From Podarcis gaigeae (Eukaryota), in the NCBI GenBank assembly GCA_964106915.2, contig OZ066921.1: a DNA stretch of 64,000 bases. The stretch is one strand, 5' to 3'. The notes under the pieces were generated by a model, which worked only from the letters and a program-made list of their open reading frames with translations, was not told the origin of the DNA and made no database searches. This document shows, piece by piece, positions 1 to 41,738 of the stretch (position 1 is the stretch's first letter; every line of letters begins with the position of its first letter). The position numbers and the translations under genes are program-made.

Positions 1-1456
1 CACAATCAGTAAGCCAAAAACAAACCCAATAGGGTTTACTTCCAAGTAGACACACACAGGATTACACTGTTAATGTCAAGAAACCGAACTTGCTTCTTTG
101 AAGAACTCACCACTTTAAGAAAACCTTCCCTGTATCTATTTCAGTTTGAATAAATTCTGGCAATGCTTGCCAATTTTGAAATTTGCAAGACAAGCATAAA
201 ACATTTTACTTTATGTCTGTCCTCTGAGTTTTTAATCACCTTTGTCTGAGGAAAACTCTCTGCTTTGTTGCAAAGGATACCAAATTATAACAATGCTGCA
301 GTGGCAACATAAAATATACTCTGTAGAGTTTATTATAATCTACCTTTACAAAGTTATATTTTAAGTATGGAACTGGAACAACAAAGTGTACACAAATTGA
401 AGGTGATTTTCCTACAGATGGGAAGGTGTTTCCTATCTGCACAATATTCACCAACCTAAGGATAGCTTTGTGAACATACCACAAACACATACAGAAAATA
501 AAATAAGCCCACTGTTTTATTATGAGCTACAAAAATAAACATTACTGGAAACCAGTGGGCAATCACTTGGATCCCAATATTCCCCTGTATGAGCAGTGTG
601 TGTGTGAGAGAGAGAGAGATTCTTCAGGCAACTGCACTCACCTCTCTACTCTGAAGGTACTCTATCCTTCTGTAGCCTGTTTTAAACTGACACTGAGGTT
701 GCAGATGGAGAGAAACAGTGACACATACAACCTTATGAGTGGAATTGTATTCTGCTCATGCAGCAGGACCTTTGGATCCAAGCCACTATTTCTAAATTGA
801 GATGCAGTTAAGTGAAAAGTGTGAAGTGGAAAAGATGAGAAACCACCACCCAGGCATGACTACAGACAACAACAGCAACACACACACACACACACACACA
901 ACCGAGAAGCACACAGCAAAACAGGATTAGAGATTTATTTCTGAAAAATCAAATACATAACTGAAGTGACATGGAACACAAATTTGGTTCAGCGTATTTT
1001 AACATTTTAGTAAGTGTTAATATAATAAGATCAAAATCAGCTGTCTTTAATTGATGGAGAGAGTGAAACAGAAGTAGGCGAAGTGCAGATCCCTTATAAA
1101 TAGCTTTGTATGGTACTGTTGAGGAAGACATGGAGGAGCCGATCTCAGCTTCAGGGATTACATTTTTAACATGCTTTTATTGAAAAGCTTCCTATTCACT
1201 AATCAGTTTCCACAGGGAAGAGCTAGACAACAATTCCAGGACAGATTAGTTCAATAGTTGCTAAATCAGACTAGAATATATATTCATATGTAAACCTTGC
1301 ATTTTAGCATAAGAAACCATTGAACTTAGTTCCAGATTATCACCTCTCCTGTATTTCTCAGTGTGAACCTGAGCTGAACACTAGGGAAAAGTTAAGGTAA
1401 TGCTTTTAGCTTGTTTTTTAAACATATGTTGATAGAACTTAAAGGCAGATACCAAC

Positions 1457-2021
1457 CCATTTCCTGCTTTCGAGTTGCTTTTGCTGTCCGTGCTGAGCTG
1501 AGAAAGGACATAATGAGGCGCTTTGGCACTGTCAGCATCAAAGATATCCATGGTTGACTCTTCACAATCTCGCCGTTTGATCCCCGGTCTCTGCTTTGGA
1601 TTTCGTTTACGTGATTTACGTGGCACCTCAGTGTTATCATTGTAGGAACTGGTGCTCATGTTACTGAAGTTGGAGGGGGAATCCTCCATCCACATACTGC
1701 AGCTCTGCTCAGATTCCAATCCGCACCCCTCATCCTGGCAGGACATCCGGCTGTTGTCCAGCAAGTCCTCCGGTGGTGGTGTGATGTACAGGACTGTGTG
1801 CCTCTTCGGTGTGGACTGTTGTTGCTGCTGCTGGGCTGTGTTATTGGTTAACTGCTTGTCACTTACCCCTCGGTTACTTACCCCCATGGCTGAGGAGCAG
1901 CTCTCCACTTGCATAGCTTTGCTGTCAGTGACTGAGGTAGAGTAAATGGTGGGACTGGAAGAGGTGGTAAAGGAGCTGCAAGCACCGCCCATGGAGGAAG
2001 AGGAGGGAGCTGAAGAAGCAT
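1457..2021 (-). CDS. NFAT5: NFAT5 (TonEBP) large N-terminal coding exon (565 nt), [18 protein letters not shown]...[12 protein letters not shown]...SKAGNG; contains the auxiliary export region and NLS
   Basis: Translation is nearly identical to recalled vertebrate NFAT5. Acceptor caccgcag|ATGCT at 2022/2021 (phase 1); donor AATGG|gttggt at 1457/1456. The gene continues beyond position 1. Confidence 0.97.
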
Positions 2022-2461
2022 CTGCGGTGTACAATTCAGAAGTAAATACAGGGTACATGATCCCAACTGTGCTGGCTATAGCAGTCCCTTTGAAGTAATG
2101 TGATTAGTGAACTGATTTTTTCCCCCAAATGAATGTTTTGGAATTTGGCTTGTTTTTGAATTTAAACACTTCAAGTGATATAAGGCTTAAGCAACACAGA
2201 AGTATTCTGAAAAGTGTCCAAATGATACTTCCATTTTTGTGCATGTGGCAATCAGACTTTTTTCTTTAAATTTTCTTTAAGTCATAAAAAGGCTGTAAGC
2301 AAACAAGGGCGCTTTTATTGCCTCAGCAGGACTATGAGTTTAAGCCATTTTATCTAAAATGATAGGAACCCCAATGCAAGACATGTGTCAGTGCTTTTAG
2401 GCCACATTTCATGCCAATCAACCAGCATCTGAAATTTTTGAAAAAGGTGGGACTGTGCTTA

Positions 2462-2593
2462 NNNNNNNNNNNNNNNNNNNNNNNNNNNNNNNNNNNNNNN
2501 NNNNNNNNNNNNNNNNNNNNNNNNNNNNNNNNNNNNNNNNNNNNNNNNNNNNNNNNNNNNNNNNNNNNNNNNNNNNNNNNNNNNNNNNNNNNN
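2462..2593. other. Assembly gap (N run)
   Basis: N bases. Confidence 1.
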
Positions 2594-5500
2594 TCATTAT
2601 TCCAGATATTAACTATTAAATGAGAAATGAAAGACAAAAATAACTTAACCGCAACAAAATGGAACTGGTACCAATCACCATTTATGGCTTAAAAAAATTA
2701 TTCAGCTGAGATTTGAAATCAGAGCATGCTGGTAAGAAAATGGAAGAGGCATGATCAAGTCACTTCCTTATGTGTTACTTCAAGTCCATAAAAATATAAA
2801 ATGAATTAAAGCCACCCAGCATTACTGATGGAATAAGTAGCAGCCCATGTCTCAGCAAAAGGAACATTATTAGAGTTGATGGCTAAATAACTACCAGGGT
2901 AGGTGCTGGCCTAAGAATTAGATATCTGTTTGCGACTAGGGCTTCTTAAAAGCAGGTTAGGCAAGAAGAATGCATAGATAAAATATATTTAACTGCCCAC
3001 AAAGCCTTCACTCCTCAACAGTGTCCTGAAGTCAAAGTGATTGCTCTGAGCTAAGGAGATTGTGGGCTGCAACTCTCTGCATATATCTGAGAATGCTACT
3101 AAATAAAAAAATTACCCACCAGCTTAAGACATCTCCCTATTCCAGAATAATTAGCTTAAAAAATAGCTGTATTAAGTTGATAGCACTACCTGCTGAAGGG
3201 AGCAAACAAGTGTGGTAAAACTTATGTTAACTATAAAAAGGAAGGTGGCTTCTGATGACTCAATGAACAGAATTTCTGTGTATAAACTGAAAGGGTCAGA
3301 AAAAGGAATTAAGATTATTGCAGGTTCCTTTTCTTTTAAATGCATTCAATATGCAACAATATATTTAAGGTACAGAAAAAACATAAACTGACAAACTGAC
3401 CTAGTGAAAATGTTAGTATTGCATTAAGAAGCCCAAGAAATATAGACTAAAAGCAAAACAGATCAATCTTCTGTTTAGTTTTAGTTATGAAGGTTTCAAA
3501 TGTGAACCTATCAGTCAGGTAACAGTGCACTCTTCCCTTAGAACTACCCCCATCCCATCTCCAGCCAGTCTCTGGAATAATCTGGAGCCACTGACAGATA
3601 CCAGTTCCATTTTCCAGCTTGTTCCTTGGCAAATGCAGTGGCTGAAATTGGAAGTTTCAGTCACTCAGAACTGCATTTTAATTAAAAAAAAAAAAAAAAA
3701 CATTTTCCAAGTCCTTTTTGTATCATGCATTAATGCAATGCTTTCCTTAGAAAGATGTAAAGTTTGCTAATTTCAGTGACTATATATAATTGCTGATTTG
3801 CAGCCACTTTGAGTTGAAAAGTTTGCTATGGGACATTATTTTTTTAGCTAGCTTTTGTTAAAACAGCACTAACTTCCATTTGCTTTTAAATAGTCACCCA
3901 CCTAGAAATGCAAAAATGCGGCTAGCATACTGCATGCACTGTAAAACATGCAGGAAGAATGCTCTAAACTTGCATTGCTGCAGACAATCCTTTCCCCCTC
4001 TCTAGTAGCACCCCACCCCGAAAGGAAACTCCATGCAGAATATGACCATCTCTGGATTCTTCCCCAAACAAAGATGATCATACAAGGGTCAGGCGTTAGT
4101 ACGGAGGCTGCCTCATCTTTGATTTAAGGTGCAGAGAGTTTACACACTTAAACTGTGTGTTTGGCACCAACCCATTATGCTGATCTGTGAATAGTGTGGA
4201 TAGAAAAGTAACCATGTTCCTATCTAAAATGGAAGAGTTTGGAACTTTCACATCAGTCCACACTGGGGTAGTTATGCCAGGCAGGATTAGCAGCCTGAAG
4301 AGGGAATGCACATAAAATAAAATCCTACCAAGAAAGCCAAGGTATGCTAATTTTATCAAGCAAAATATTAGCACCAAGTTAAAGCTTGAAACCTGTGTTA
4401 AATAAATAGTAACTTCCTTAAAAGGAAATTCTCCAATTAGTATAGTTTTGCAGATAATTTGAAAAACACAGACTACCAGAACCCTAATTTTTTGCTACCC
4501 CTGTGAATCAGTCATGTGGACTGCAACCAAATAATTGTTTGGTTTATTTAATCACAGCTGTGCCAAGTTATAAACTTGAAGCTTTAAAGCTTAAAAAATA
4601 GGCAAGTTTAGTCACACCAATTAAAAAGAACTAATTATATGTCCTTATACCAATATTAATAATATAACCCAGGCCCAACATCCTACTATTGCATTTGAAG
4701 TTAGGCAGGCGGACCTCTTTACTTTTGTAGCTGAAAAGGCTCAGGAAATGATTGATGCATTACACATCAGTGAGATAAATGCTATTTTTTCAGGTAGTGT
4801 ATACATAATTTGGATGCAGTGTTAAATTCAATCTGAAAAAGTAATGGCAATCTGTTGACTGATCACTCCATACTAAAGCAGTCTCAAACCCTTTTTATTA
4901 TTAACAAAATGTCCTTTCAACTGAGCCCAAATCATGGCAATAAGAGTGCCAGCCATTAGGAGTTAGCCAAGTCCAAGACATAAGGAAATTGGCTTTCTCT
5001 AGGAAGGTGGTCACCAGAAAGTAACCCCTCATATTCCCACTTTGCAACCTTAACCCAGAAACACAGTCCTCCCACTTTAAGCATTTTCCTCTTACTTCTT
5101 GAATAGAATTTACTCACTAGGACCCAAGAGACACAGCTCAATAAGCACAAACTCGATGTTTGGGGAGGGTTGGATATTTTTACTGCATTTTGTTAAATAC
5201 AAGATTACAGTCTAACAAGGTTCAGTTTCAGTTACATTTTAAAGCCATTTTAGAATTACAATCACATGCCAAGAATGTTTTATGACAGTCTCCAGAGGCA
5301 TGGCAACAAAAACTACAATACACAGTTATCTGTGCAAGTCATTTTATAATTAGCTCATCCAAGATCCAAACAGGAGAGATCACACTGGAAGTTAAAAGCC
5401 CTTTGAGCTCCAATACCATCAATAGTCAAAGATGAAATAAAATATGTAGTTCAAGAAAGAACAACAAGCTCCTGCACCCTTATTGGCATCTGCTTCAGTC

Positions 5501-6597
5501 TTAGAAACAAAAGGACTCAAAGCAAGCCTGTGCAGTGCAGTGCAAAGTAATGGCCACCCCTGCTCTGTGCTACAAGTGACAGTTCATGTCAGTTTGCAAA
5601 GACCCTTTGCTTTCCAGGTACTAGTAGCTTTTAACCTAAATAAGCATTTTGTTTTTATGGCAGTGAGGCAGTTTTTTAAAGCCTCTCCTCAGAATAAGAT
5701 TTAGGAGATGAGAATCAAAGAGGTTATGGGCAGCTTGGGTTACTAGCTAAAGCTACAATAGCTTTATACAACCTTGGGAGACTAAGACTCTAAGATTTTA
5801 AGCCCTTTTAAAATTCTCTGTCCTCCATCAGCTCACTGCTAGTTTCAGAGAGATTTGCTATCTTTAGGCAGAGCTTAAAGGAAGCCATTTCTTGCCCTAA
5901 GGTATTTCTCTTAACATAAGCCCTTCAGGGCTACAAGGCTTTTCAAGAAGACCAAACATCAGTTCAAGTGATGAGAAAACTAACAGGCAAGCTACCCTGC
6001 AAGGCAAAGTCACCTTCCAAAGTGGAGAACATGGGAGATCAAAAGCTAAGGCTTGGGATTCCACCTGTATATGAACCACTATTATGCACAAGCAGCTGGT
6101 GGAAGAACTCACAGCTTTCCAGAAACTGGCACACTTGCCATGCTATTTGCTGTTCAGAAAACAGAATGAAAACAATAAGCATTCAACAACACAGGGTGAA
6201 CCTTTGGCATTTTGATAGACTCAATCCCCAGAGCCTATCCCTACACAAGTGTCATTTATGAACCTTGCATTTTCTATTCTTGGCAGTCTCCACTTCCAAT
6301 ATTGCTCAAATCTTTCTGTGGGTTAATTTTGCAGGACCAGTGAATTCAGAGCGACAGTTTTGGAGTAAAGACAGAAGGACACGAGCCCTTGTGTTGTCAA
6401 AGGTAGAAGTATGAACCGGGACAAAGTGGCTGCAAACCTGCTTCCGACACCTTCTGTGTCAACTTTGGCTGCTTACTTTTCTTCAGCTTCATTTATTGAT
6501 GTAAAATCAAAAACTTTATTAAGAGTTTAACTTCAGTCAATCCACTATTTATAACAAAACAAAAAGAAAAAGAAAGGAAAGACTTATGAAGAAGTCT

Positions 6598-6761
6598 NNN
6601 NNNNNNNNNNNNNNNNNNNNNNNNNNNNNNNNNNNNNNNNNNNNNNNNNNNNNNNNNNNNNNNNNNNNNNNNNNNNNNNNNNNNNNNNNNNNNNNNNNNN
6701 NNNNNNNNNNNNNNNNNNNNNNNNNNNNNNNNNNNNNNNNNNNNNNNNNNNNNNNNNNNNN
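6598..6761. other. Assembly gap (N run)
   Basis: N bases. Confidence 1.
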
Positions 6762-7328
6762 GCTAGCATCCCAGCAAATATCATAAAAGCAATCCAATTT
6801 ACTTTAAAAGTTCAAGGCAGATTCAAAGTAGGTTGGTTACTTACATTAAACCCCAAACAATTTTAAATTCCCCATTACATTCACATGCCAAAACAAGTAT
6901 TATTTAACACAATTAAAAACAGGATTCAGTCTGCTTTGACAGACGGGAAATCCATAATTTGACACTCATATTTACAGATGCACAAGTGGTTATTTCTTAC
7001 CTGGAACTTTTGTTGGGTGATTCATGTTCACCAATTCAGACTAGGTGGTCTGCCACTCAAGAGCGACAATCAGTTGCAATCAACCAGCAAGCATGAATTC
7101 AGAGCCCTCATACCTATTTATCCCTGCCCAGTATTCCTCTCCAGACACAAGGAAATGCTGCATTGTCTTGATCAATAAACTTAACATTTCTCCAGAAAGG
7201 AAATGACTGTCCTTTCTGGTCCAATCTTTACAATATGCGATAATTAGTTTGGTAAATTTTTCACACTAGTCATCATTCTACGAAGCTGGTAAGAGACACG
7301 TGATACTCTCACAAGTGTTCTTACCATA

Positions 7329-7688
7329 GGTAAAGGTAAAGGTACCTCTGCCCGTACAGGCCAGTCTTTACAGACTCTAGGGTTGTGCGCTCATCTCACT
7401 CTATAGGCCGGGAGCCAGCGCTGTCCGCAGACACTTCTGGGTCACGTGGCCAGCATGACAAGCTGCATCTGGCGAGCCAGCACAGCACACGGAACGTCAT
7501 TTACTTTCCCGCTAGTAAGCGGTCCCTATTTATCTACTTGCACCCGGGGATGCTTTCTAACTGCTAGGTTGGCAGGCGCTGGGACCGAGCGACGGGAGCG
7601 CACCCTGCCACGGGGATTCGAACCACCGACCTTTCGATCAGCAAGTCCTAGGCGCTGAGGCTTTTACCCACAGCGCCACCCACGTCTC
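7329..7688 (-). mobile_element. Full-length Sauria SINE with 13-bp TSD
   Basis: (ACCTTT)n tail read as ggtaaaggtaaagg; tRNA-like head with B box (GGTTCGAATCC on minus); TSD TGTTCTTACCATA at 7316-7328 and 7689-7701. Confidence 0.92.
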
Positions 7689-7840
7689 TGTTCTTACCAT
7701 AAGCATAAGCAAAACCCTGCAACTACTGCTCAGTGGAAACATAGACTGACAGCTAACAAACTCACCCCAAATCTATCCTATTAAAACAAATGTGTTTTGT
7801 TCAAGAGCAGATATAACTGATCAGTCAATAAAAAACCACA

Positions 7841-7974
7841 GTAAAGCATGAGACTCTTGATCTCAGGGTCATGGGTTTGAGCCCCACATTAGGCAAAAGA
7901 TTCCTGCATTGCAGCAGGCTGGACTAGATGACCCTTGCGGTCCCTTCCAACTCTACAATTCTGAGATTCTATGA
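7841..7974 (+). mobile_element. tRNA-Lys-like SINE with CR1-type 3' tail
   Basis: Head agcatgagactcttgatctcagggtc...; tail ggactagatgacc...cccttccaactctacaattct-gattctatga. Confidence 0.8.
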
Positions 7975-8897
7975 GAAGAGAAAAGAGTTTTAACAGGATA
8001 AAAAGAGGTAGGCACTGGCAAACCACCTATTTACTTTTACTGGATTTAGTGCAAAGAAGAAAGCAGGTATAATGTATGTAGCAAGGGTCCTTGTGCAGTG
8101 TATTGTGAAGAACATGACTAAGCTTAAATTGCATAGCAATTCAGGCAGATGAGGAAACCATCCTTAAAGCAGCCACCGAAGTCTCATAAAGCTAACTGGA
8201 CAATGAACTCTGCTATGCCTCTCTGGAGCCATATGTGTGCCAGTGTGTGTCTAAAACTATTGATGCTGTATTGTTAGATCACGCAGCACAATGTCAAACA
8301 AAATAACCTGTCTTTAGAAGACAGATAAGAATCCCTTCTAGTCCCCTCTTTGCCAAATACACACACAACATAAATCACTATTTTAAAAAAATATGATTTA
8401 TCTCCTCCTCTTTCCACTGATCTGTAGAATCTTGCCAGTTTTTAAACTATGTGAATTTGAAACTTTGTCAGAACTATATTGTACTCTGAGGTATAATGCA
8501 CATTATCATGCAAATTAAGCCTCATGTCACATTAACCATGTCAAAAGAGAAAGTATAAAGAGAAGCTACAGAAGACAAATGAACCCTTTGCTATTACGGA
8601 CAAATATAGTCAAAATGACCTAAGATGTGTTTTTATACTCAAGTTTCTGAGCAACTACTTGCTCCTAATATGACAGAAGCTAATATTTCTAGTTTAAAAG
8701 TGCATTCCTTGCGAAAATTAAAAAATAAAATTTTACCGACTTAGGGTAAAAGTAAACTAAAGGAGCACTTATTGTTGCATTATTTTTTTTTACCTTCAAG
8801 CAAATCAAAATGATTAAAAACAAGGCACTTGACCTTTCTCCACCTTGTGAAAGTCATGGCCCCTCATTCAAGAGAGATTTGCATGGTGTTTTTAAGA

Positions 8898-9148
8898 TAG
8901 AGGTAGGCAAACTAAGACCCAAGGGCCAGATCTGGCCCAATCGCCTTCAAAATCCAGCCCGTGGACGGTCCAGGAATCAGTGTGTTTTTACATGAATAGA
9001 ACGTGTCCTTTTATTTAAAATGCATCTCTAGGTTATTTGTGGGGCATAGGAATTCATTCATATATTTTTTTCAAAATATAGTCTGGCCCCCCACAAGGGC
9101 TGAGGGACAGTGGACTGGCCCCCTGCTGAAAAAGTTTGCTTACCCCTG
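8898..9148. mobile_element. Non-autonomous hAT (Charlie-like) MITE
   Basis: Imperfect TIRs tagaggtaggcaaact / agtttgcttacccctg; perfect 8-bp TSD TTTTAAGA at 8890-8897 and 9149-9156. Confidence 0.88.
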
Positions 9149-10467
9149 TTTTAAGACATTTGTTGTGATGCTATAAAGTTTAATATCAAACTGTGAAAGG
9201 GAGGTTGGCAGATATGTGTTGGGAGTGAAAAAGCAACCGATTTGAGACAGGTCATTTCTCAGACCCATTCTTGAAGCACTGCTTCTTCCTACTTAGCAAA
9301 CACAGCATTTCACATTAAATGCTAGTATCCTGCTAAGAAACACCTGTCTGCACCTTCTGGCAAGAGACACCTAGAAATAAACTGGCTGCACAGAAAGGAT
9401 AAGCTCTCTCTCCCTCTCTCTCCACACACACAGAGGTGTTATCAAGACGTATCTGCCTTCAAGAGATAGACAACTCTTCCCAGCTTAACTATGTATAGTT
9501 CATCATGAAAGTTCAGAAATAAGCTGAGAACTATGTTAAAATTAAGAATTCATAGCTGGTTAATTTACAAAGAAACCACCTCATGTTTGGATTGATGAAT
9601 ATGAAACACACCTTTTATGTTAAAATAATCAAATGTGCTCTTAAAAGACCAATTACCAAGACTCAGTTTTAAAATGGTTTAGACTGATTTGAAAATTGGA
9701 AGCCAAACAGTAATAGCAGAACTAGCAGTCTGTTCTTGCAGGCCCTCATACCTGAAATCAGCCAATCCTGTTCCTCCAGAAATCTGAAGTTAACTGCAGA
9801 AAATCTTTATGTAACCTGCTTATGTGTCCCAGAACCTCAGATCAAAGCACTGAAAGAAAAACCTGGGGCAATCTGATTTGCAGCCAGATACTGTGTCACC
9901 CTGTGGCTAGGGAAGCAGAGAACAAATGAAGTAAAGTCTTAAATGAGGAAAATATTTTTTACCAGCTCTCTTCTCTTAATCTAGTCATTGGCACCAGTAA
10001 TGGCAACTGTGTCAGCAAGCTTAAATAAAGGAGAGGGAGCTCTACATGTAGCCAAAACACAGAATATTTGCTTGGGTCTTCATGAAGAAACTGCAACCAG
10101 CTTTAAAAAGAGTTGCTTTTGGATTCTTACTAATTATAAAAAAGCAGAAAACTGTCCCTTCAGGATAAATAAGATTAGATACAACAGATTTGCACAAAAC
10201 AATAAGGAGTTTTGTTTTTTGGACATAAAAGGAATGGGCTCCTGCAGTTCTAGATTGTCCAAGGTCACCTTCCCCTCCCAGCCACTTGACAATGTGGCTG
10301 ATTGGAAGCTATCCTTGTCTGCCTGATGAAAGGACTAGAATGAGTGAAAGTGATGCTTTGTCCCATTTTATAAGTGATTTCAATCTCATAAAACCCTCCA
10401 CAATCCCACAGCCATAACTCCCATCTTCCCAAAGTCCCTAGCTAGATTGCGCTTTGAAAATTGGGAT

Positions 10468-10605
10468 GGTTCAGTCGGTAGAGCACGAGACTCCTAATCT
10501 TAGGGTTGTGGGTTCAAGCTCCACGTTGGGCAAAAGATTCCTGCACTGCAGGAGGTTGGACTAGGTGACCCTTGTGGTCCCTTCCAACTCTACAATTCTA
10601 TGATT
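10468..10605 (+). mobile_element. tRNA-Lys-like SINE with CR1-type 3' tail
   Basis: Head tcagtcggtagagcacgagactcctaatct...ggttcaagc plus CR1 tail; same family as 7841 and 27419. Confidence 0.82.
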
Positions 10606-11408
10606 ATTTCTACAGAAGAGAAGGCCAGACACAACAGTTCTGTACAGAGAGCACAATACCCTGAATGTTAATGTGGTGGCTGATTTATGTCCCCCTCTTC
10701 ATCTACAAGTAACATCTTAAAGAACTCTGGCATGGTTCAGGGTCAAGCAGAATGACCTCTGCATCCAGTTTTGGGGAAGCTTAGTACACCCAGCTGTAAA
10801 AGCCAAGTCAACCTGCATCTTCAAAGAAGGAGTGTGTGGCCCACACTCTGAAATGGGAAGAACTCCTGGGAAGAATTAGCCCCTCCATGATAAATGCTTT
10901 CTAGAATTCCAGAATTTCCCAATGCTAGGTCTTCCTAAAACTCAACTACTACCCAATGACTACAATATATTCTTTTTGTGCCTTTTGCCTTGCCTGTAGA
11001 AAAGGAGCAGAGTCACATGAATGCTCTGGCCCAAAGTTTCAGCTGGGACTTCAGCTTATCCATGTCGGAGGAGAAGGATCCTCTTTGGGTCTATGGTATT
11101 GAGTCAATCCCAAATGGCAGATACATGCTGCTGAGAAAGAAGAGATACACTATCATACCAGCAGGGTCTGTGGGCTTTAAGCTGGGTGCCCTATTCAACA
11201 AGATTTCTTGTAAGCGTTCATGTATTTGCTGAAGGTTTTACTCCTCTAAGGGCTTTCTCCTCAGTTTCTCCAATATCCCGAAGTAGCAGAACTCTCACTT
11301 CCAAGATTCCAGACATGCTTGATTAATATTGCTCCTACCTGCACACAAGGTAGTTTCCTTCAATATATTTTTAATGATTGGGGGTGGCAGAACTGCAAAC
11401 CCACCATG

Positions 11409-11752
11409 CAGACCTTCCAAGTGTCCCTATTTTCCAGGGACATCCCTGATTTAAAGAAGCTGTCCCAGTTTCTGATTTGATCCCAGAATGTCCCACTTTT
11501 CCTTAGGACACCCCTATTTTCATTGGAGAAATGTTGTAGGGTATGGAGTTGCTTGACTCCTGAGCCATCTGAAGGCAATCCTGTACAGGGAAGATTTTTT
11601 AAAATGTTTTATGTTTTATTATATATATATATATTGAAAGCTGCCTGGAGTGGCTGGGGCAACCCAGTAAGATGTGTGGGGTATAAATAGTAAAATTATC
11701 ATTATGGAATGGAGCATTCCTATTCTCACTGGAGAAATGTTAAGAGGGTATG
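11409..11752. mobile_element. MITE-like DNA element containing an L2-like 3'-end fragment (~11590-11705)
   Basis: Degenerate TIRs cagaccttccaa / aagagggtatg; repeated subterminal cctattttcattggagaaatgtt. The internal segment is the reverse complement of the L2-like 3' ends at 20335 and 21423. Confidence 0.6.
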
Positions 11753-13570
11753 CGCCATGTGAATTAAAAAGAAATCTTGGCAAACTTCATATTGTTATCA
11801 CGGCTGTTTTGTCTCTGTCTCTCTTCAGTATCCATGTCTGCTTATCTTGACTGATTCTCTTCCCAGCATGTTAAGGCTGCAATTTCTGAGTTAGCCTTTA
11901 CAGCAATTTGATTGTCCTCTCTATAAATTATCTGGATTTGGAGCCTATTGTATCTACATTCAGCACTGCTGCAATATAAATAACTGTTTTTTAAATTTTG
12001 GTCTATGTTCACTCACTTAAAACTTTAAAACTACAAATCTAGGGGCAGTCTCTATGATGAAAACTTAAGTGTGAACCACCCCTTCGGAACAAACTGTAGG
12101 ATGCTGACCACAGTAATTGTAATTATTCGGATTTAAGTTTTTAAGTTTTTTAAGTCAGAGAAACATTTAATACTATTAGCAAAGAGATAGAAAGAATATT
12201 GAAAAAGTATTCTTATTCAATTAATATGGTCCCCTATATAAATACCATATTGTGGAATATGCTAGTTTTCTTTAGTTTTTGTTAATATGAACTCCCATAG
12301 GTTCAGTTTTTGAAAGGAAGTGGATTGACTGTCAGACAACTAATGCCTAGAAGTAACAGACACATAGTTCTTCTCATCAACTATATCAGATGCTTGAAAA
12401 TGATCTCAAAATATGAAAATCAACAGTAAAGTATTTCTGTGGATTTAAAGTGCTAGCAGTTTTCAAAACATTTTGCAACTGTTGTTCTCTTTTGACTGAA
12501 TTAGCTTCTGAAGTGCAGAATGAAGCTACACTGGAAGATTTGTTAACTAAAGTAGTCTTGGATCTAATTACCAATCTCCCCAATACACAATTAAATCCAC
12601 AGATTTCATTAGGGAAAGTATTGAAATATATCAGCATTGAGCAGTGCTGTAAAGTTTTACCCTAGACTTAAGCCTTGTACTACCAAACCAAGAGGCTCAT
12701 TTTCAGTGTTGAACATACTAGAGAAGGCACTCCTATCTAAACTGAATAATGCACTGAACACATTGCTTAGTCCAGCTATGCTCTGATAAAAAATAGCCTT
12801 ATGGAGAAGGCTAGACTAGGACAGACACATGATGTTCTATTACAAATATTACATGGTCAGTCAAGCAATCTCGGCCCATGAGAGGAAAACCCTGGAGCAC
12901 ATCCATTAGTGAGGGTATTATAAAGTTGGAGGCATTCCAGATGAACAAGAATTTGAATGCCAACTGCCAATTCAGGTTTGCCCCTTCATAACAAAAACAG
13001 TCGTCATTCCCCTAAACAGAATAAAATGATCCAGCAAAAGGACTTTTATTTTAAAAGAACAAACTGTATAAGGCTGAGTAGGTGATAACTTAAGTTTAAA
13101 AAATATTTTGGTAACTGGATTCAAACATACCTACATTTAGCAGGTATCAACTATCCCTTCACACATCATCTAAACACTTTCAGGACCAAACATAAAGTCA
13201 TGTAGCTGAATCATTCATGGTTTCATCAAGCCATGTGGTGGTGGGGAAATGAAAGTAGAAGCCACAAACCCAGAACACTGCTGCAGATTTCATTTCTGTC
13301 CTGGTTTGCAAGGCAGCATTCTCTGGCCCATTCAAACACTCCCATTTAGTTCTAAACTGGCAACTACTACATCAAAATATAATATATCTGAGGCGTCCAA
13401 GACCACCATAGGGGCAAAAGAGGAAATGTGCAATAAAATTTCCCCTACTTCTAAGTCTGTTAGTCTTGTGGTTTTTTTTTTTAAGACTGCAAACTTTTCC
13501 AGCACTGCTCATGCTGACAACAATATTAATATGCATTAGGTCCTTAATTTTACTCAAGTGGAGTACTTAC

Positions 13571-13696
13571 CAGCAGCAACTACACCCGGAGGGGGCGAAC
13601 CTGCCTCACCACCACTTGTTTGACTCATGGATGCTACAGAGAGTTCTCTGGAAGGTGGTAACTGCAGCTCCTTTGGGAGAAGGTCATAGACAGATT
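13571..13696 (-). CDS. NFAT5: NFAT5 coding exon (126 nt), [42 protein letters not shown]
   Basis: Recognisable NFAT5 peptide. Polypyrimidine acceptor ttctttctttttag|AATCTG; donor GCTG|gtaagt; phase 1 at both ends. Confidence 0.97.
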
Positions 13697-30039: not shown

Positions 30040-31260
30040 ACTTGTGAACCGCCACCGCCGCCAAAAAGAAGGATGCTAATCTGGCAATTGATAGACAGCG
30101 AATGAAAGTAGGGGGCACTGCCTCTGAGCACGTGTAGAGCGCAGCCCCGCCCCCACCCGAAAAGTGACCTTATTAACGGCGACTGCGCCCCTTCCTCACC
30201 TTGGTCGAGCGGGGGGGGGGGCAGCAGCCCCTCCCCGTCCCTCCCGAGCGACCTCCTTCTCGCACACGCCCCACAGGGTCGGGACAAATTCCTGAGAAAC
30301 AACGGTGATCGAGCGAGCGAGGAGGCCGCTCCGGAGTCCAGAGTCGTCGATGCAACGCGGCGGCGCTCTTTTCCTCCCACCGCCCCCCCTGAGGCCCACC
30401 AGAGACTCACCCTTGGAGTAGAGGGACTTAGGGGACTCGAGGTCGAGGTCGGCGCTGAGGAGAGAGATGAAGTCCGAGGGCATCGCAGCTCCGCGGCCCG
30501 GCCGGGGGGAGGTGGCGGCGGTGGGGGGCGGGACGGGGGGGCACGGACGGATGGTCGCCGCAGCGGTTGCTGACCACAGGCAAGGGGAGCGGAGGGGGCT
30601 GTGCTGCGGCGGCGAGAGGCGGGACCAGGGACAGAGGAGGCGCGGGCCGGGCTCTTATTCAGCCACCGCCGCTCCTGACAGGAATTCGGTGCCTGTCGCC
30701 CAGCAGGACCGCCCCCTCTCCGTTGACATTGCGCATGCGTCGCCCGGCTCTCGAGCCACGGCGACGGTGAAAAAGAGAGAGGAAAACACAAAAACCAACG
30801 GGAAAAGGAGGCGCATGCGCAAGGCCTCAGACCGCGGGGGGGGGGGGGAGACGGCGGGGCAGCGGCAACAGGCGACGCAAAATGGACGTTGTGCGCGTTT
30901 GCGCCGTGCTCGGCAAACAAGTACCCTCAAGCCTTCGACGCATGCGAGCCTCTCGCGTATACGAACCAGAGGCGGCTTTAATGCGCATGTGCCAGTTCTT
31001 GTATGGACAGGGGCCTCGCGCAGTCAATTCGAGGGTGGTTTCTGCGCCTGCGCTACAGGGGATATTCGCGAGAGAGAGGCCTCTTTGTCAGAGTGGAGGG
31101 AGGTGGCTGTACAGCTTCCTTTTCAGATTGGGGGGGAGGGCAAAGAAGAGTCAAGGCAATCTCTTAGGAAGAGTGAAGAGCTGTAGGCTGTGCCGTCGTC
31201 GCCGGCTTTTTTTTGTAATTGCTACTTTTGTTTTAACTGACGTGCTTGATCACTGGTGCG
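30040..31260. promoter_or_regulatory. NFAT5 CpG-island promoter and 5'UTR
   Basis: High GC and CpG density around exon 1. NRF1-type GCGCATGCG(C/T) at 30731-30740 and 30811-30820. Minus-strand ATTCCTGTCAG..GCGGCGGTGGC near 30685 resembles the recalled 5' end of mammalian NFAT5 mRNA. Confidence 0.88.
30411..30483 (-). CDS. NFAT5: NFAT5 canonical first coding exon (73 nt), MPSDFISLLSADLDLESPKSLYSK, containing the leucine-rich NES
   Basis: Exact NFAT5 N-terminus. Start context gagctgcgATG; donor AAGG|gtgagt (phase 1); lies in a CpG island. Confidence 0.97.
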
Positions 31261-37420: not shown

Positions 37421-37526
37421 CCTTAAAACCATAAGCTCATTGGGACAGGTACTGTCCATTTAACTCTGTGCTGGGTCATGTGAACTACCAACCCTGTATT
37501 AAAATAACTTTTATTTTTATTAAATA

Positions 37527-37669
37527 ATCATAGAATTGTAGAGTGTGATGGGACCCTAAGGATCATCTAGTCCAACCCCCTGCAATGCAGGAATATGCAG
37601 CTGTCCCGTACAGGGATCAAACCTGCAACCTTGGCATTATCAGCACCATGCTCTAACAAACTGAGCTAT
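37527..37669 (-). mobile_element. tRNA-Ile-like SINE with CR1-type 3' tail
   Basis: Minus head agctcagtttgttagagcatggtgctgataatgccaaggttgcaggtttgatccc joined to the same CR1 tail. Confidence 0.75.
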
Positions 37670-37927: not shown

Positions 37928-40019
37928 TACTTAGTAACAATATTTGTATGCCATCCCATAAGGTAAAGTTCTTCCAAGTTCTTGTTCTTGTTGCTGCTGC
38001 CGCCGCCGCGGCTGTTTACTTACTGGAGAAACACCTTTGCAAGCATTCATCTTTGCTATAGTCCTGTGAGACTGACCATGCAAGAGGATGCTGGGGTGTA
38101 ACACATGATTCAAGGGCTGTGTCCCAAGTTTGTTGCAACAAATTCTGGAATGTATCTCTTGGACTTATTGCTGCCCTCTATAAAAAAAAATCTCTGCCAC
38201 CCCAGGAAGCTGACCTTGAGTTGCATATGCAGACAAACAATGCTGACACCACAGCCACATAGTTTCAATCCCCTTTTCACAATGGCCCTCTCAAAGTAGG
38301 TTAGACAGAGAGTGAGCTTTTTGGTTGAACCAGGATTTGAACCCAGGTCTTCTCACTCTAAAGTTCTACACTCAGTCCTTGTACCATAGTGGCTGTCTTT
38401 GAGCCTGAGCATCAAAACAGGGAAATGCCAGGCCTTGCTAGCTCTTCATAAGATATTTTGCATGAGCTCACACACTTCTTAGTACTTGTGTCTGAGGTTA
38501 TAGCACCAGCTGTTCCTAGCCATGTCTTACAGATTAGCAATAAATACAAAGTTGAGGTGCACAGGGACCTTTGTCATAGTAAAAAGTGCCCCTGTTTCTC
38601 TTAAGGAATCAAGAAAGTTGCCACAGTGCACACCTCCCCCCCAAAAAATGTTGAATACAAACAGACACGTACAGAAGAGTTTGAGGACATTGCCTTTATT
38701 AGAAAAAGCTCTGAAGGTTGAGAGAATGCATTCAGGTGACAGAACAGACAGGAGAGAAATATGTATTTGGGAGGCAGGGGATTAGAGAAGAAGCTGTTTT
38801 ATATAGTACTCCCTTATTACAGCCTTTGTTGTTCCTGGAAATATTCTGGTATTATAAAATAAGGTGCCAGATTGTCTCAATTAATTCTGCAATTCTTTCA
38901 ATTAGGGGTTTTGTTGGTTGTTACATAGCAGCTATGATGGAATATTTCAGAAACCCTGAATAATGTGGAAAAAAAAGGTTTTCAGCTCAACATACCCACT
39001 GCCTGTTCTCTCTCTCATTTGTTTGTGACAGTCCCTCTGAACCAACCAAAAATAAAAGCATATTAAAAATTACAGGACTAGCATCATATAACTTTTGCAC
39101 TCCAATTACTCACAACTCAGTCCTATCAAGCTGCAATTATTAATCAAATGATGAGACCAGAAATCAAATCTGTTCTACCCCATGACCTTCTGAAGTTTAG
39201 CTACAGCTATGTTAAAAATGATACTTCAAGAACTATCCACATGTGCTTTGTAGGATCTAATATTCAACTACAAAAATGGTCTGAAATCCATGCATATGTC
39301 AGTCACTCCACTGTGGATAAAATCACCCCTGAACAGGTAACCTGACTATGAAACTACTTGGTGCTCCATAGGCCATTGGCTACATCTAAATTTTAAACAA
39401 TGTCAGGGCTTGGAATTTCCCTCCTCTACATATCAGGAAAATGTTCAGTTTTGCTAGCGTGAAAGAGAACACCAACCCGCAATCCTCTCCCTGGTAAGCT
39501 ATTAGATTGGTAGGGTGTGGAGAGTGACTTTCAGAATATAATAGAATGGGGTGGACCACACAGACCCCACTCCCATCAAATGCTATTGCCATAACTACCA
39601 AATCTCTTGAGGACATGCAGGGCTATAGCACTCCTTAGCAAGATTGCATTTCTAATTAAAAGCGTAAAGTTGCTGGTTGAAGATCTTTTGCTAAGGCTCC
39701 TGCAGTCAGAACCATATTCAACAAATCTGACTTCCAGGTAGATATGCCTTGGACAGCAGTTGTCATGTGCTATAAGTTACTCTTCCTTAAATTTTGTAAA
39801 GAAGGGCGTCTTTACACAACTGCCTGCATTTTTGGACTCTTGTTGAGGATAGTGTGTGGCTGGGGTAAAGGCACTTCATGGATGAGCTGCTGCACTTTAA
39901 AATATACCTGCACCCCATTGCTAAAAGAAAAAAACTGACATTCATGGATACATGTTTTTGATTTGGGTGGGAGTGGGTTTGAATCTAAAGTTTGTCCTAG
40001 ACAACATTATAGTTGCAAA

Positions 40020-41480
40020 GATCTTTTATTAAGGGCGACTCGAGCCAGGTTTTGCTCGTTGCTCACCCTCCCCTCCTATTTTGATAGCCTTATCCATTGG
40101 CGTTTCCTCCTGGCCGCTCTATCTGGCTGGTCTTTAACCCCGCATTAAATTAGCCCAGCAAGAAGCTAGGTGGCACGTTTCGTGAGCAAAGGCGTCACGT
40201 CGAGCCCCCTTGGGTGGCTTGGCGAAGGAGTCTCCGAGGAGGGCATTTCAATGACCCCCCCCCCTCTCCCAGACTGAAGAGCAGGAACCCCCCCGGGGAG
40301 TCTCCTTTTACAGCCCTCTCCGAGGCACTCGGGCTTGGGAGAGGGTGGGAGCGGCGCTGAGCCAAGGAAACTCGAGGGAGCGGACCTCGTCGGTGGGCCA
40401 GGGGCACGGAACGCCCCGCAATTCCCGCGGCCCAGAGCCGTTCCCTCGGGGGCAGTAGCGCTTCTGACAGCAGGAAGCGCTCTTCTTGGAAAAAACTGTT
40501 CCGAGGAAGGGCCGCGGCTGAGGTGTGCACGTAGGCGGTCCCCGGCTCCATCCAGACCGGACTGGGGAAGACTTTCGCCGGTGCCCGGAAGTCTGGAGAA
40601 GTTAACCGCTGCTGGTGAGCGTGGACAAGACTGGGTTAGCTGGAACCCAGCAGCCTGACTTTCGGGCGTCGCAAAGCAAAGGCAGGCGCTGCCTTGGTGG
40701 AAGGGCTGGAGCCCAGAGGCTCTTTCCGTGGCTTGCTCGCTCCAGCCCTGGGCCGGCTTACCTGGGGGGGCGGCGGCGACGGCTCTCCCTCCGAGGGCGC
40801 TCCAAGGCCAGTCGTGCAGCGGCGCAGCGCAGAAGGCGCTCTCGTCGGCCAGCATGGAACGCATGGCGGCCACGTCGTGCCAGGGGCGCCTGCGCGGGTC
40901 CAGCCTGCTCGACGGACGGGCAGAAGGGCGTCTCAGCTGCTCGGGGCTCGCGCGCTCCTCTGCTCGGCCGCGTGCGGAGCTGGGGACCATCGGTCTCCCC
41001 CGGGGGGAGGAGCTCAGCCGCGTGGCGCCCTTCCCTCCGCCCCGGCAACAGGTATTTATTGCGCAGTCCGGGCCGCGGGCCTGCGGATTAATGGCCACTT
41101 GGCACCAACACCGGGGCGGAAGGGGAGGGGGCGCACACTGTGTCCTGCTGCCGCCCTCCCGCTTCAAGCCCCACGAGAGGGGCTGTTCTTGCCCCCCAGA
41201 ACAGACGAGCAGAGCCCTCTGACCTTGAGCAACGCGGGGAACGAAGACGCTTCCCCACCCCAAGCAAACGCCGCTTTCGGTAGCCAGAACCGACAGACTG
41301 CTGACGCCGCCATTTCTTTCTCCTCGAGGGGGCAAAGTGGTGTCCAGAGGGGCTTCTCCTGCTGCCGCTTCGTTCCCTCATGGGAGGGGAAGAAGAGGCT
41401 GAGCTGTTTGTTGCTTGCGAACTTGGTCATCGGCTTCCCGATCCTGGCCCGATTGCTCTGACTGTCAACTAGGTTTCCAG
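40020..41480. promoter_or_regulatory. Orphan CpG island between the CYB5B 3' end and NFAT5 (candidate distal promoter or enhancer)
   Basis: About 1.4 kb of GC/CpG-rich, non-repetitive sequence with GC boxes (41036-41043, 41113-41120), ATTGG and CRE-like motifs. No recognised annotated gene starts here. Confidence 0.8.
40762..40864 (-). CDS. Putative alternative first coding exon of NFAT5, MRSMLADESAFCAAPLHDWPWSALGGRAVAAAPP (103 nt, phase 1)
   Basis: GCCGCCATG start context, open frame and consensus donor CCAG|GTAAGC. Phase matches the NFAT5 acceptors at 13696 and 2021. No transcript evidence is available here. Confidence 0.45.
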
Positions 41481-41738
41481 GCCCGACTCAAAGTGCTGGT
41501 TTTCCCCTATAAAGCCCTAAATGTCTTAGGAGCACAATACCTTAAGGAGTGCCTCTCTCCATATGAACCTACCTGGCCCCTGCGATCATCATGCGGCCCT
41601 TCTTTGTGTGCCTCCTTGTGTTTGTTGGGTTAGATTTTGGGTTTTATTATGCATTTAGTGTTCTCATTTTGTATTTTTATGTTGTTTACCGACGTGATCT
41701 TCAGGTGAAGGGCAGTATACAAATTTAATAAATAATAA
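41465..41738 (+). mobile_element. Degraded L2-like LINE 3' fragment
   Basis: Peptide KVLVFPYKALNVLGAQYLKECL and 3' terminus gaagggcagtatacaaatttaataaataataa. Confidence 0.65.

Follow-up and report, generated by a model that had tools for sequence, protein, structure and literature searches.

A probable distal first coding exon of NFAT5, conserved in squamates and a turtle, that would replace the NES-bearing N-terminus

In mammals, NFAT5 has been called the sole tonicity-responsive transcription factor known so far, and reviews list only those isoforms of it that arise from internal starts and cassette exons. Alternative first exons occur widely, and a CpG island upstream of NFAT5 in the lizard Podarcis gaigeae raises the question of whether this gene possesses one, and whether its use would remove the nuclear export signal (NES) encoded by canonical exon 1. 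We analysed the window, that is, the whole stretch of 64,000 nucleotides, whose minus strand carries CYB5B (~59.4–45.4 kb) followed by the 5' part of NFAT5. The CYB5B 3' region is 95–96% identical to that of Podarcis, Lacerta and Zootoca (lacertid lizards). The original prediction held that the island harbors a first coding exon for NFAT5, used in place of exon 1 and its NES. This central proposal passed every comparative test that we ran, and we consider it very probable that the window contains a conserved distal first coding exon of NFAT5, served by an alternative promoter and giving rise to an NES-less isoform (Table 1).

Table 1. Positions in the window of the distal exon, its surroundings and the NFAT5 exons (a slash marks the exon–intron boundary)
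Feature	Position	Strand	Remarks
Distal first exon, coding part	40762..40864	-	34 codons + 1 base (103 nt), phase 1; 11 reptile genomes
5' splice donor CAG/GTAAG	40756..40764	-	Same in 10/10 squamates; GAG/GTAAG in turtle
Distal CpG island (candidate second NFAT5 promoter)	40000..41500 (approx.)	.	GC 0.59–0.72, CpG o/e 0.68–0.87
AT-rich motif ATAAATA, TATA-like	41053..41059	-	195 nt before ATG, conserved
Upstream ATG	40988..40990	-	Lacertid-only; start in P. muralis and P. raffonei gene calls
Canonical NFAT5 coding exon 1	30411..30483	-	73 nt, phase 1; 24-aa NES-bearing N-terminus
Shared NFAT5 exon	13571..13696	-	126 nt, phase 1-1 (symmetric), 42 aa of AD1; predicted acceptor for both first exons
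Next shared NFAT5 exon	1463..2021	-	Acceptor 2021 in same phase; 3' end 1463 approximate, read from sequence

The distal exon across reptiles

Every feature listed in the original prediction was found where it had been placed. A GCCGCC-ATG at 40864 opens 34 codons that run to a phase-1 donor after 40762 (CAG/GTAAGC), and the claimed agreement of phase with canonical exon 1, acceptor 13696 and acceptor 2021 was borne out. The upstream motifs AATAAATA (41060–41053) and CCATTAAT (41094–41087) are both present. When the island was resampled 3000 times with a first-order Markov model, 0.23% of the resamplings showed an RCC-ATG that opens a stop-free phase-1 exon with AG/GTRAG at its end, and the GCCRCC-ATG version of the same pattern never arose (0/3000). 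We also scanned the 15 kb from the CYB5B stop to canonical exon 1 for an ATG, an open phase-1 length of ~80–135 nt and a GTRAG donor. The distal exon was the only candidate, recovered both from its own ATG and from a Met 9 nt downstream.

For comparison across species, CYB5B was used as an anchor and 10 kb of flank was taken from other genomes. The exon occupies the orthologous place downstream of CYB5B in the green turtle (Chelonia) and in ten squamates covering lacertids, an anguid, a cordylid, a gecko and a snake (the window, P. lilfordi, P. muralis, P. raffonei, Lacerta agilis, Zootoca vivipara, Elgaria, Hemicordylus, Eublepharis and Erythrolamprus). The original prediction had named loss of the ATG, frame or donor in close relatives as one line of counter-evidence; an ATG, an open frame, a phase-1 length and an AG/GTAAG donor are kept in 11/11 reptile genomes. 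The start context is RCC-ATG in 10/10 squamates and GTG-ATG in the turtle, and the exon measures 94, 100, 103 or 106 nt in squamates and 109 nt in the turtle. Identity to the deep squamates reaches 0.76–0.86 within the exon, compared with ~0.2 just past the donor and 0.2–0.6 more than 30 nt upstream. A profile made from squamates only, with no turtle sequence in it, picked up the turtle copy (E=7.7e-5), which lies 9.8 kb beyond CYB5B (L014:58227–58335) and is the sole ATG–donor exon of this type in 10 kb of turtle flank. Judged from these sequences, the exon is older than the split of lepidosaurs from turtles and archosaurs; lizards and turtles parted roughly 280 million years ago.

Two crow assemblies, in which the 7.7-kb CYB5B–NFAT5 interval is gap-free, contain neither the island nor the exon, and from these sequences the exon appears to have been lost in crows. 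An upstream NFAT5 start annotated in one crow assembly (L011:24435) was rejected as a counterpart: it is an unrelated 16-codon exon, canonical exon 1 is missing there at a 400-N gap in the 3' flank, and the start is likely a compensation for this gap. In Rhineura no exon was found within the 10-kb flank, along which collinearity is gone ~3 kb before the flank end.

The same comparison bears on a group of explanations that we regard as scarcely credible, namely a single-exon ORF running through the donor, an ATG and donor that coincide by chance within an island of enhancer type, or an exon of another gene captured by a transposon. The first draws on a frame that stays open past the donor in the window (403 codons, 41377–40169), on a P. 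lilfordi protein (CAI5782261.1) annotated as a 136-aa single-exon product, and on unspliced RNA-like contigs (see below). However, the read-through beyond the donor is 45–256 aa long and frameshifted between relatives, it shares no common stop, and the alignment ends at the donor; we therefore rejected the 403-codon ORF as a gene. Chance has to contend with the resampling frequency of 0.23% or less. Transposon capture is opposed by the lack of convincing terminal inverted repeats, by the finding of just one copy per locus, the window included, and by its identical place in 11 species. These comparative data largely refute all three.

Coding constraint and promoter features

We estimated omega on 26 codons from the 11 species with a fixed species tree. 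It was 0.27 in the predicted frame (p=7e-6, likelihood ratio vs 1) and 0.30 in squamates alone (p=5e-4), whereas the other sense frames gave 0.92 and 1.64. The mirror antisense frame gave 0.42, as expected from the third-position shadow. At least five length changes have occurred in the exon, all of them multiples of 3, compared with 14/62 indels in the lacertid flanks, a test that is optimistic because the 3' part of the exon is GCC-rich and prone to 3-nt slippage. The distal peptide is less constrained than canonical exon 1, where no amino-acid change separates the window, gecko, snake and crow, and the synonymous sites of the distal exon are rather constrained too (pS 0.09–0.37). The peptide is 31–36 aa long, with a conserved Met-Arg-Ser start, a Cys and an aromatic-Pro-Trp core, which we take to be reminiscent of short Trp-based docking motifs; the peptide, being under selection, may itself be functional. 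Neither peptide matched a Pfam family, the ESM Atlas returned a single uninformative match (0.76), Rfam gave none in the CpG island, and a bacterial promoter scan, irrelevant to this DNA, was empty.

Constrained synonymous sites, together with a distal omega well above that of canonical exon 1, would also fit a mainly regulatory role, in which the transcripts chiefly yield the short isoforms NFAT5a and NFAT5b from downstream ATGs, through leaky scanning or a cassette exon that shifts the frame, and the 34 codons serve as an upstream ORF. The human isoforms a and b do come from downstream starts (PMC3655004), and an NFAT5a-type start, Met-Gly-Gly-Ala-Cys (MGGAC), is present in the second shared exon (ATG 1992, 1992–1978, minus strand). 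No convincing small cassette exon emerged from a scan of the interval from 30411 to 13696. Against this role stand the strong and conserved start context, the phase 1 found in 11/11 genomes, the confinement of the low omega to the predicted frame, and NCBI models that continue into a full-length product. We hold it to be improbable and retain the reading of a protein-coding first exon.

The surrounding island is distinct in composition, its CpG o/e reaching up to 0.87 vs 0.27 for the whole window, and an orthologous CpG island surrounds the exon in 10/10 squamates, 3.0–6.7 kb past the stop codon of CYB5B. Around the turtle copy there is neither a CpG island (o/e 0.17) nor ATAAATA, so that squamates may have gained the island or the turtle may have lost it. 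ATAAATA is exact in lacertids (L. agilis has one change), Elgaria, gecko and snake, and occurs as a variant only in Hemicordylus; it lies 140–229 nt before the ATG across species, within GC-rich DNA that aligns poorly, and its chance expectation is 3e-5 to 1e-3 per species. We read it as TATA-like from its sequence, and it is presumably also compatible with a forkhead site. No conserved acceptor-like site was found within 350 nt upstream of the exon, as expected of a first rather than an internal exon.

The TATA-like element of the original prediction is thus conserved, while the homeobox site proposed alongside it is present in the window and essentially lacertid-only; it was dropped as a conserved feature, given that lone ATTA/TAAT cores in gecko and turtle are all that occurs beyond lacertids. 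Similarly, the further ATG at 40990, proposed to add 42 aa, is in frame only in the window and three Podarcis; the frame is not kept in Lacerta and Zootoca. The extension is confined to Podarcis and the window and was rejected as a conserved feature, which, with the restriction of this ATG to lacertids, leaves 40864 as the conserved start. An AATAAA at 41060 was considered as the CYB5B poly(A) site and rejected, with read depth near zero at 42.7–43.0 kb.

Gene models, RNA and the link to NFAT5

Gene calls at NCBI begin at the distal exon in Zootoca vivipara (1508 aa), Podarcis muralis (1557 aa) and P. raffonei (1554 aa). The Zootoca call starts at the orthologue of ATG 40864 and the two Podarcis calls at 40990, and all three continue off the fetched DNA towards NFAT5. 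When the first exon is swapped for the 24-aa canonical one, their predicted lengths become 1498–1505 aa; the canonical-start calls of gecko, snake and crow have 1492, 1503 and 1498 aa. The three calls carry no Pfam annotation, and from position, strand and length we infer that they are NFAT5. Since they begin at the exon and have NFAT5-like lengths, automated annotation already holds the isoform. None of the longest products per gene considered for gecko, snake, L. agilis, Elgaria, Hemicordylus and turtle begins at the exon.

The peptide had not been recognised in the original prediction; databases do contain it, in these gene calls and in a P. lilfordi protein. Among 1.8 billion protein representatives searched, the hypothetical P. 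lilfordi protein CAI5782261.1 (L001:5001–5411) was the one true relative; we discarded four other matches as repeat or low-complexity. The P. lilfordi annotation reads the distal exon through the donor into the intron and is probably an artefact, as is probably the upstream-ATG start of the two Podarcis models. Among proteins of 128–408 aa, a range that excludes full-length isoforms, none contained the Elgaria peptide.

Part of the exon region is contained in 12 sequencing runs guessed to be RNA, which come from two related organisms and five studies. In the four runs assembled over the region, low-depth contigs (3–11x) cover the exon and the following intron; two cross the donor unspliced (40595–41121 and 40503–40963, depth 4–5) and another stops just short of it. 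Run X1 holds 45% of the index words and gave no contig over the exon. In the contigs of these four runs no 40762 to 13696 junction was seen, and their loose-end table was swamped by repeats at 41.3–42.5 kb. The unspliced contigs are equally compatible with pre-mRNA, read-through or DNA.

No junction to NFAT5 was seen in these contigs, RNA-like contigs extend into 38.7–40.6 kb (one of 1.6 kb at depth 10.8), and a few conserved blocks lie farther downstream; on these grounds one might place the exon at the head of a separate small gene or transcript that is absent from annotations, lies between CYB5B and NFAT5 and uses another acceptor. Three NFAT5-sized gene models start at the exon, however, and its phase matches NFAT5. 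In addition, the stretch from the exon to canonical exon 1 is only 5–6 kb in gecko and snake, with no other gene called. A separate gene is accordingly very unlikely in our judgement, and splicing to NFAT5 is the reading that we follow below.

Several further observations concern the locus around these exons. The 1.6-kb contig (38680–40255, RNA-like run X12), with similar low-depth cover in other runs, could be pre-mRNA, an unspliced transcript or DNA. Between both NFAT5 promoters, three non-coding blocks (38894–38310, 36444–36166 and 34616–34280) are alignable with Elgaria and Hemicordylus, and a part of the last (34362–34280) also with gecko and snake; on sequence grounds they are candidate enhancers. 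A tRNA-like Rfam match at 37522–37668 (36 bits) adjoins a segment repeated several times in the window and is likely a tRNA-derived SINE. Upstream of canonical exon 1, in the block at 30756–30649, ~95 nt show 83–86% identity to gecko and snake, and we offer the reading of a conserved promoter or 5' UTR element of that exon. Upstream of acceptor 2021, 82 nt of open frame (2103–2021, minus strand) include an in-frame AG that would give a 54-nt longer exon from 2075, a possible alternative acceptor.

Nuclear export and the meaning of a second first exon

The absence of an NES from the distal peptide, as claimed, was confirmed at the level of pattern: none of the 11 peptides has a class 1a–d, 2 or 3 pattern, whereas canonical exon 1 matches the consensus. 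The shared exon contains an NES-like pattern of its own. The NES of NFAT5 (aa 8–15) mediates XPO1-dependent shuttling under isotonic conditions, while hypotonic export requires the AED and XPOT (PMC9377714; PMC3655004). Of the predicted change in tonicity-dependent shuttling, the loss of the NES is upheld; the dependence on tonicity is not, because the NES serves isotonic shuttling and hypotonic export uses the AED, which would be retained.

In isotonic medium the NES-less fragment NFAT5(132–581) resides in the nucleus, and in hypotonic medium it is exported (PMC9377714). Full-length NES-less NFAT5a, by contrast, stays mostly in the cytoplasm under isotonic conditions, an effect of the AED and the C-terminal domain (PMC2737149). 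As full-length NES-less NFAT5a is not simply nuclear, the effect on localisation is uncertain. Its retention and the NES-like pattern of the shared exon lead us to give about an even chance to the predicted shift, which would be basal rather than tonicity-driven.

We propose that the CpG island acts as a second NFAT5 promoter, 10.4 kb upstream of the canonical one, driving the alternative first coding exon. Transcription would start shortly after ATAAATA, translation would initiate at ATG 40864, and the donor at 40762 would splice past canonical exon 1 to 13696, as suggested by the phase and the NCBI models. The product would be a near full-length NFAT5 (~1510 aa) with the selected 31–36-aa peptide in place of the 24-aa NES-bearing N-terminus, and it would keep the rest of AD1, the AED, the NLS, the Rel domain and the C-terminal activation domains. 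The AED and NLS are predicted to lie in exon 1463..2021 from domain positions in the human protein (PMC3655004). In some tissue or state, such an isoform would escape CRM1-dependent isotonic export and still be exported in hypotonicity. Whether supplying an NFAT5 of this kind is the function of the exon is, in our estimation, evenly balanced.

The proposed arrangement resembles exons IA and IB of NFATC1 and NFATC2, members of the same family in which alternative 5' coding exons on a common body give mutually exclusive N-termini (42 vs 29 aa and 23 vs 43 aa; PMC2577130). Unlike in those genes, the segment swapped in NFAT5 is a nuclear export signal, and the likeness is one of arrangement, with no sequence relation shown. 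The CRM1-dependent NES is likewise missing from human NFAT5a and NFAT5b, in which the AED, NLS and Rel domain are retained (PMC3655004; PMC2737149). They are, however, N-terminal truncations from downstream starts, whereas the distal isoform would add a selected peptide and keep the 42-aa shared AD1 exon. NFAT5a is myristoylated at Gly2 and its start carries two lipid sites, Gly2 and Cys5, both described in the human protein (PMC3655004); the distal isoform begins Met-Arg and would have no Gly2 myristoylation. The nearest relatives in databases are the Zootoca, P. muralis and P. raffonei calls, which contain the same exon, are automated and, in Podarcis, use the non-conserved upstream ATG. Our literature search found no paper describing the distal NFAT5 exon, its squamate and turtle conservation or the NES loss. 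We conclude that the NFAT5 isoform is already implicit in automated annotation and that its conservation and the NES loss are probably new to the literature.

A wider scenario can be put forward tentatively, and we think it rather less likely to be true than false. The common ancestor of living reptiles would have had two coding NFAT5 promoters, the distal one giving a full-activity, CRM1-independent isoform with a docking-motif N-terminus; promoter choice would set basal, tonicity-independent activity by tissue, and the exon would have been lost in some birds and maybe survive in other amniotes.

At a practical level, the analysis bears on existing annotations, of which two are probably in error, the hypothetical protein of P. 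lilfordi and the use of the upstream ATG in two Podarcis models. The osmoregulatory genetics of reptiles has been little studied. If the distal exon is used as proposed, promoter choice would be a route to dropping the isotonic export signal while leaving the rest of NFAT5 intact, and the distal isoform would offer a natural full-length test case, direct and inexpensive, for the contribution of the NES and a candidate for tissue-specific NFAT5 control in reptiles.
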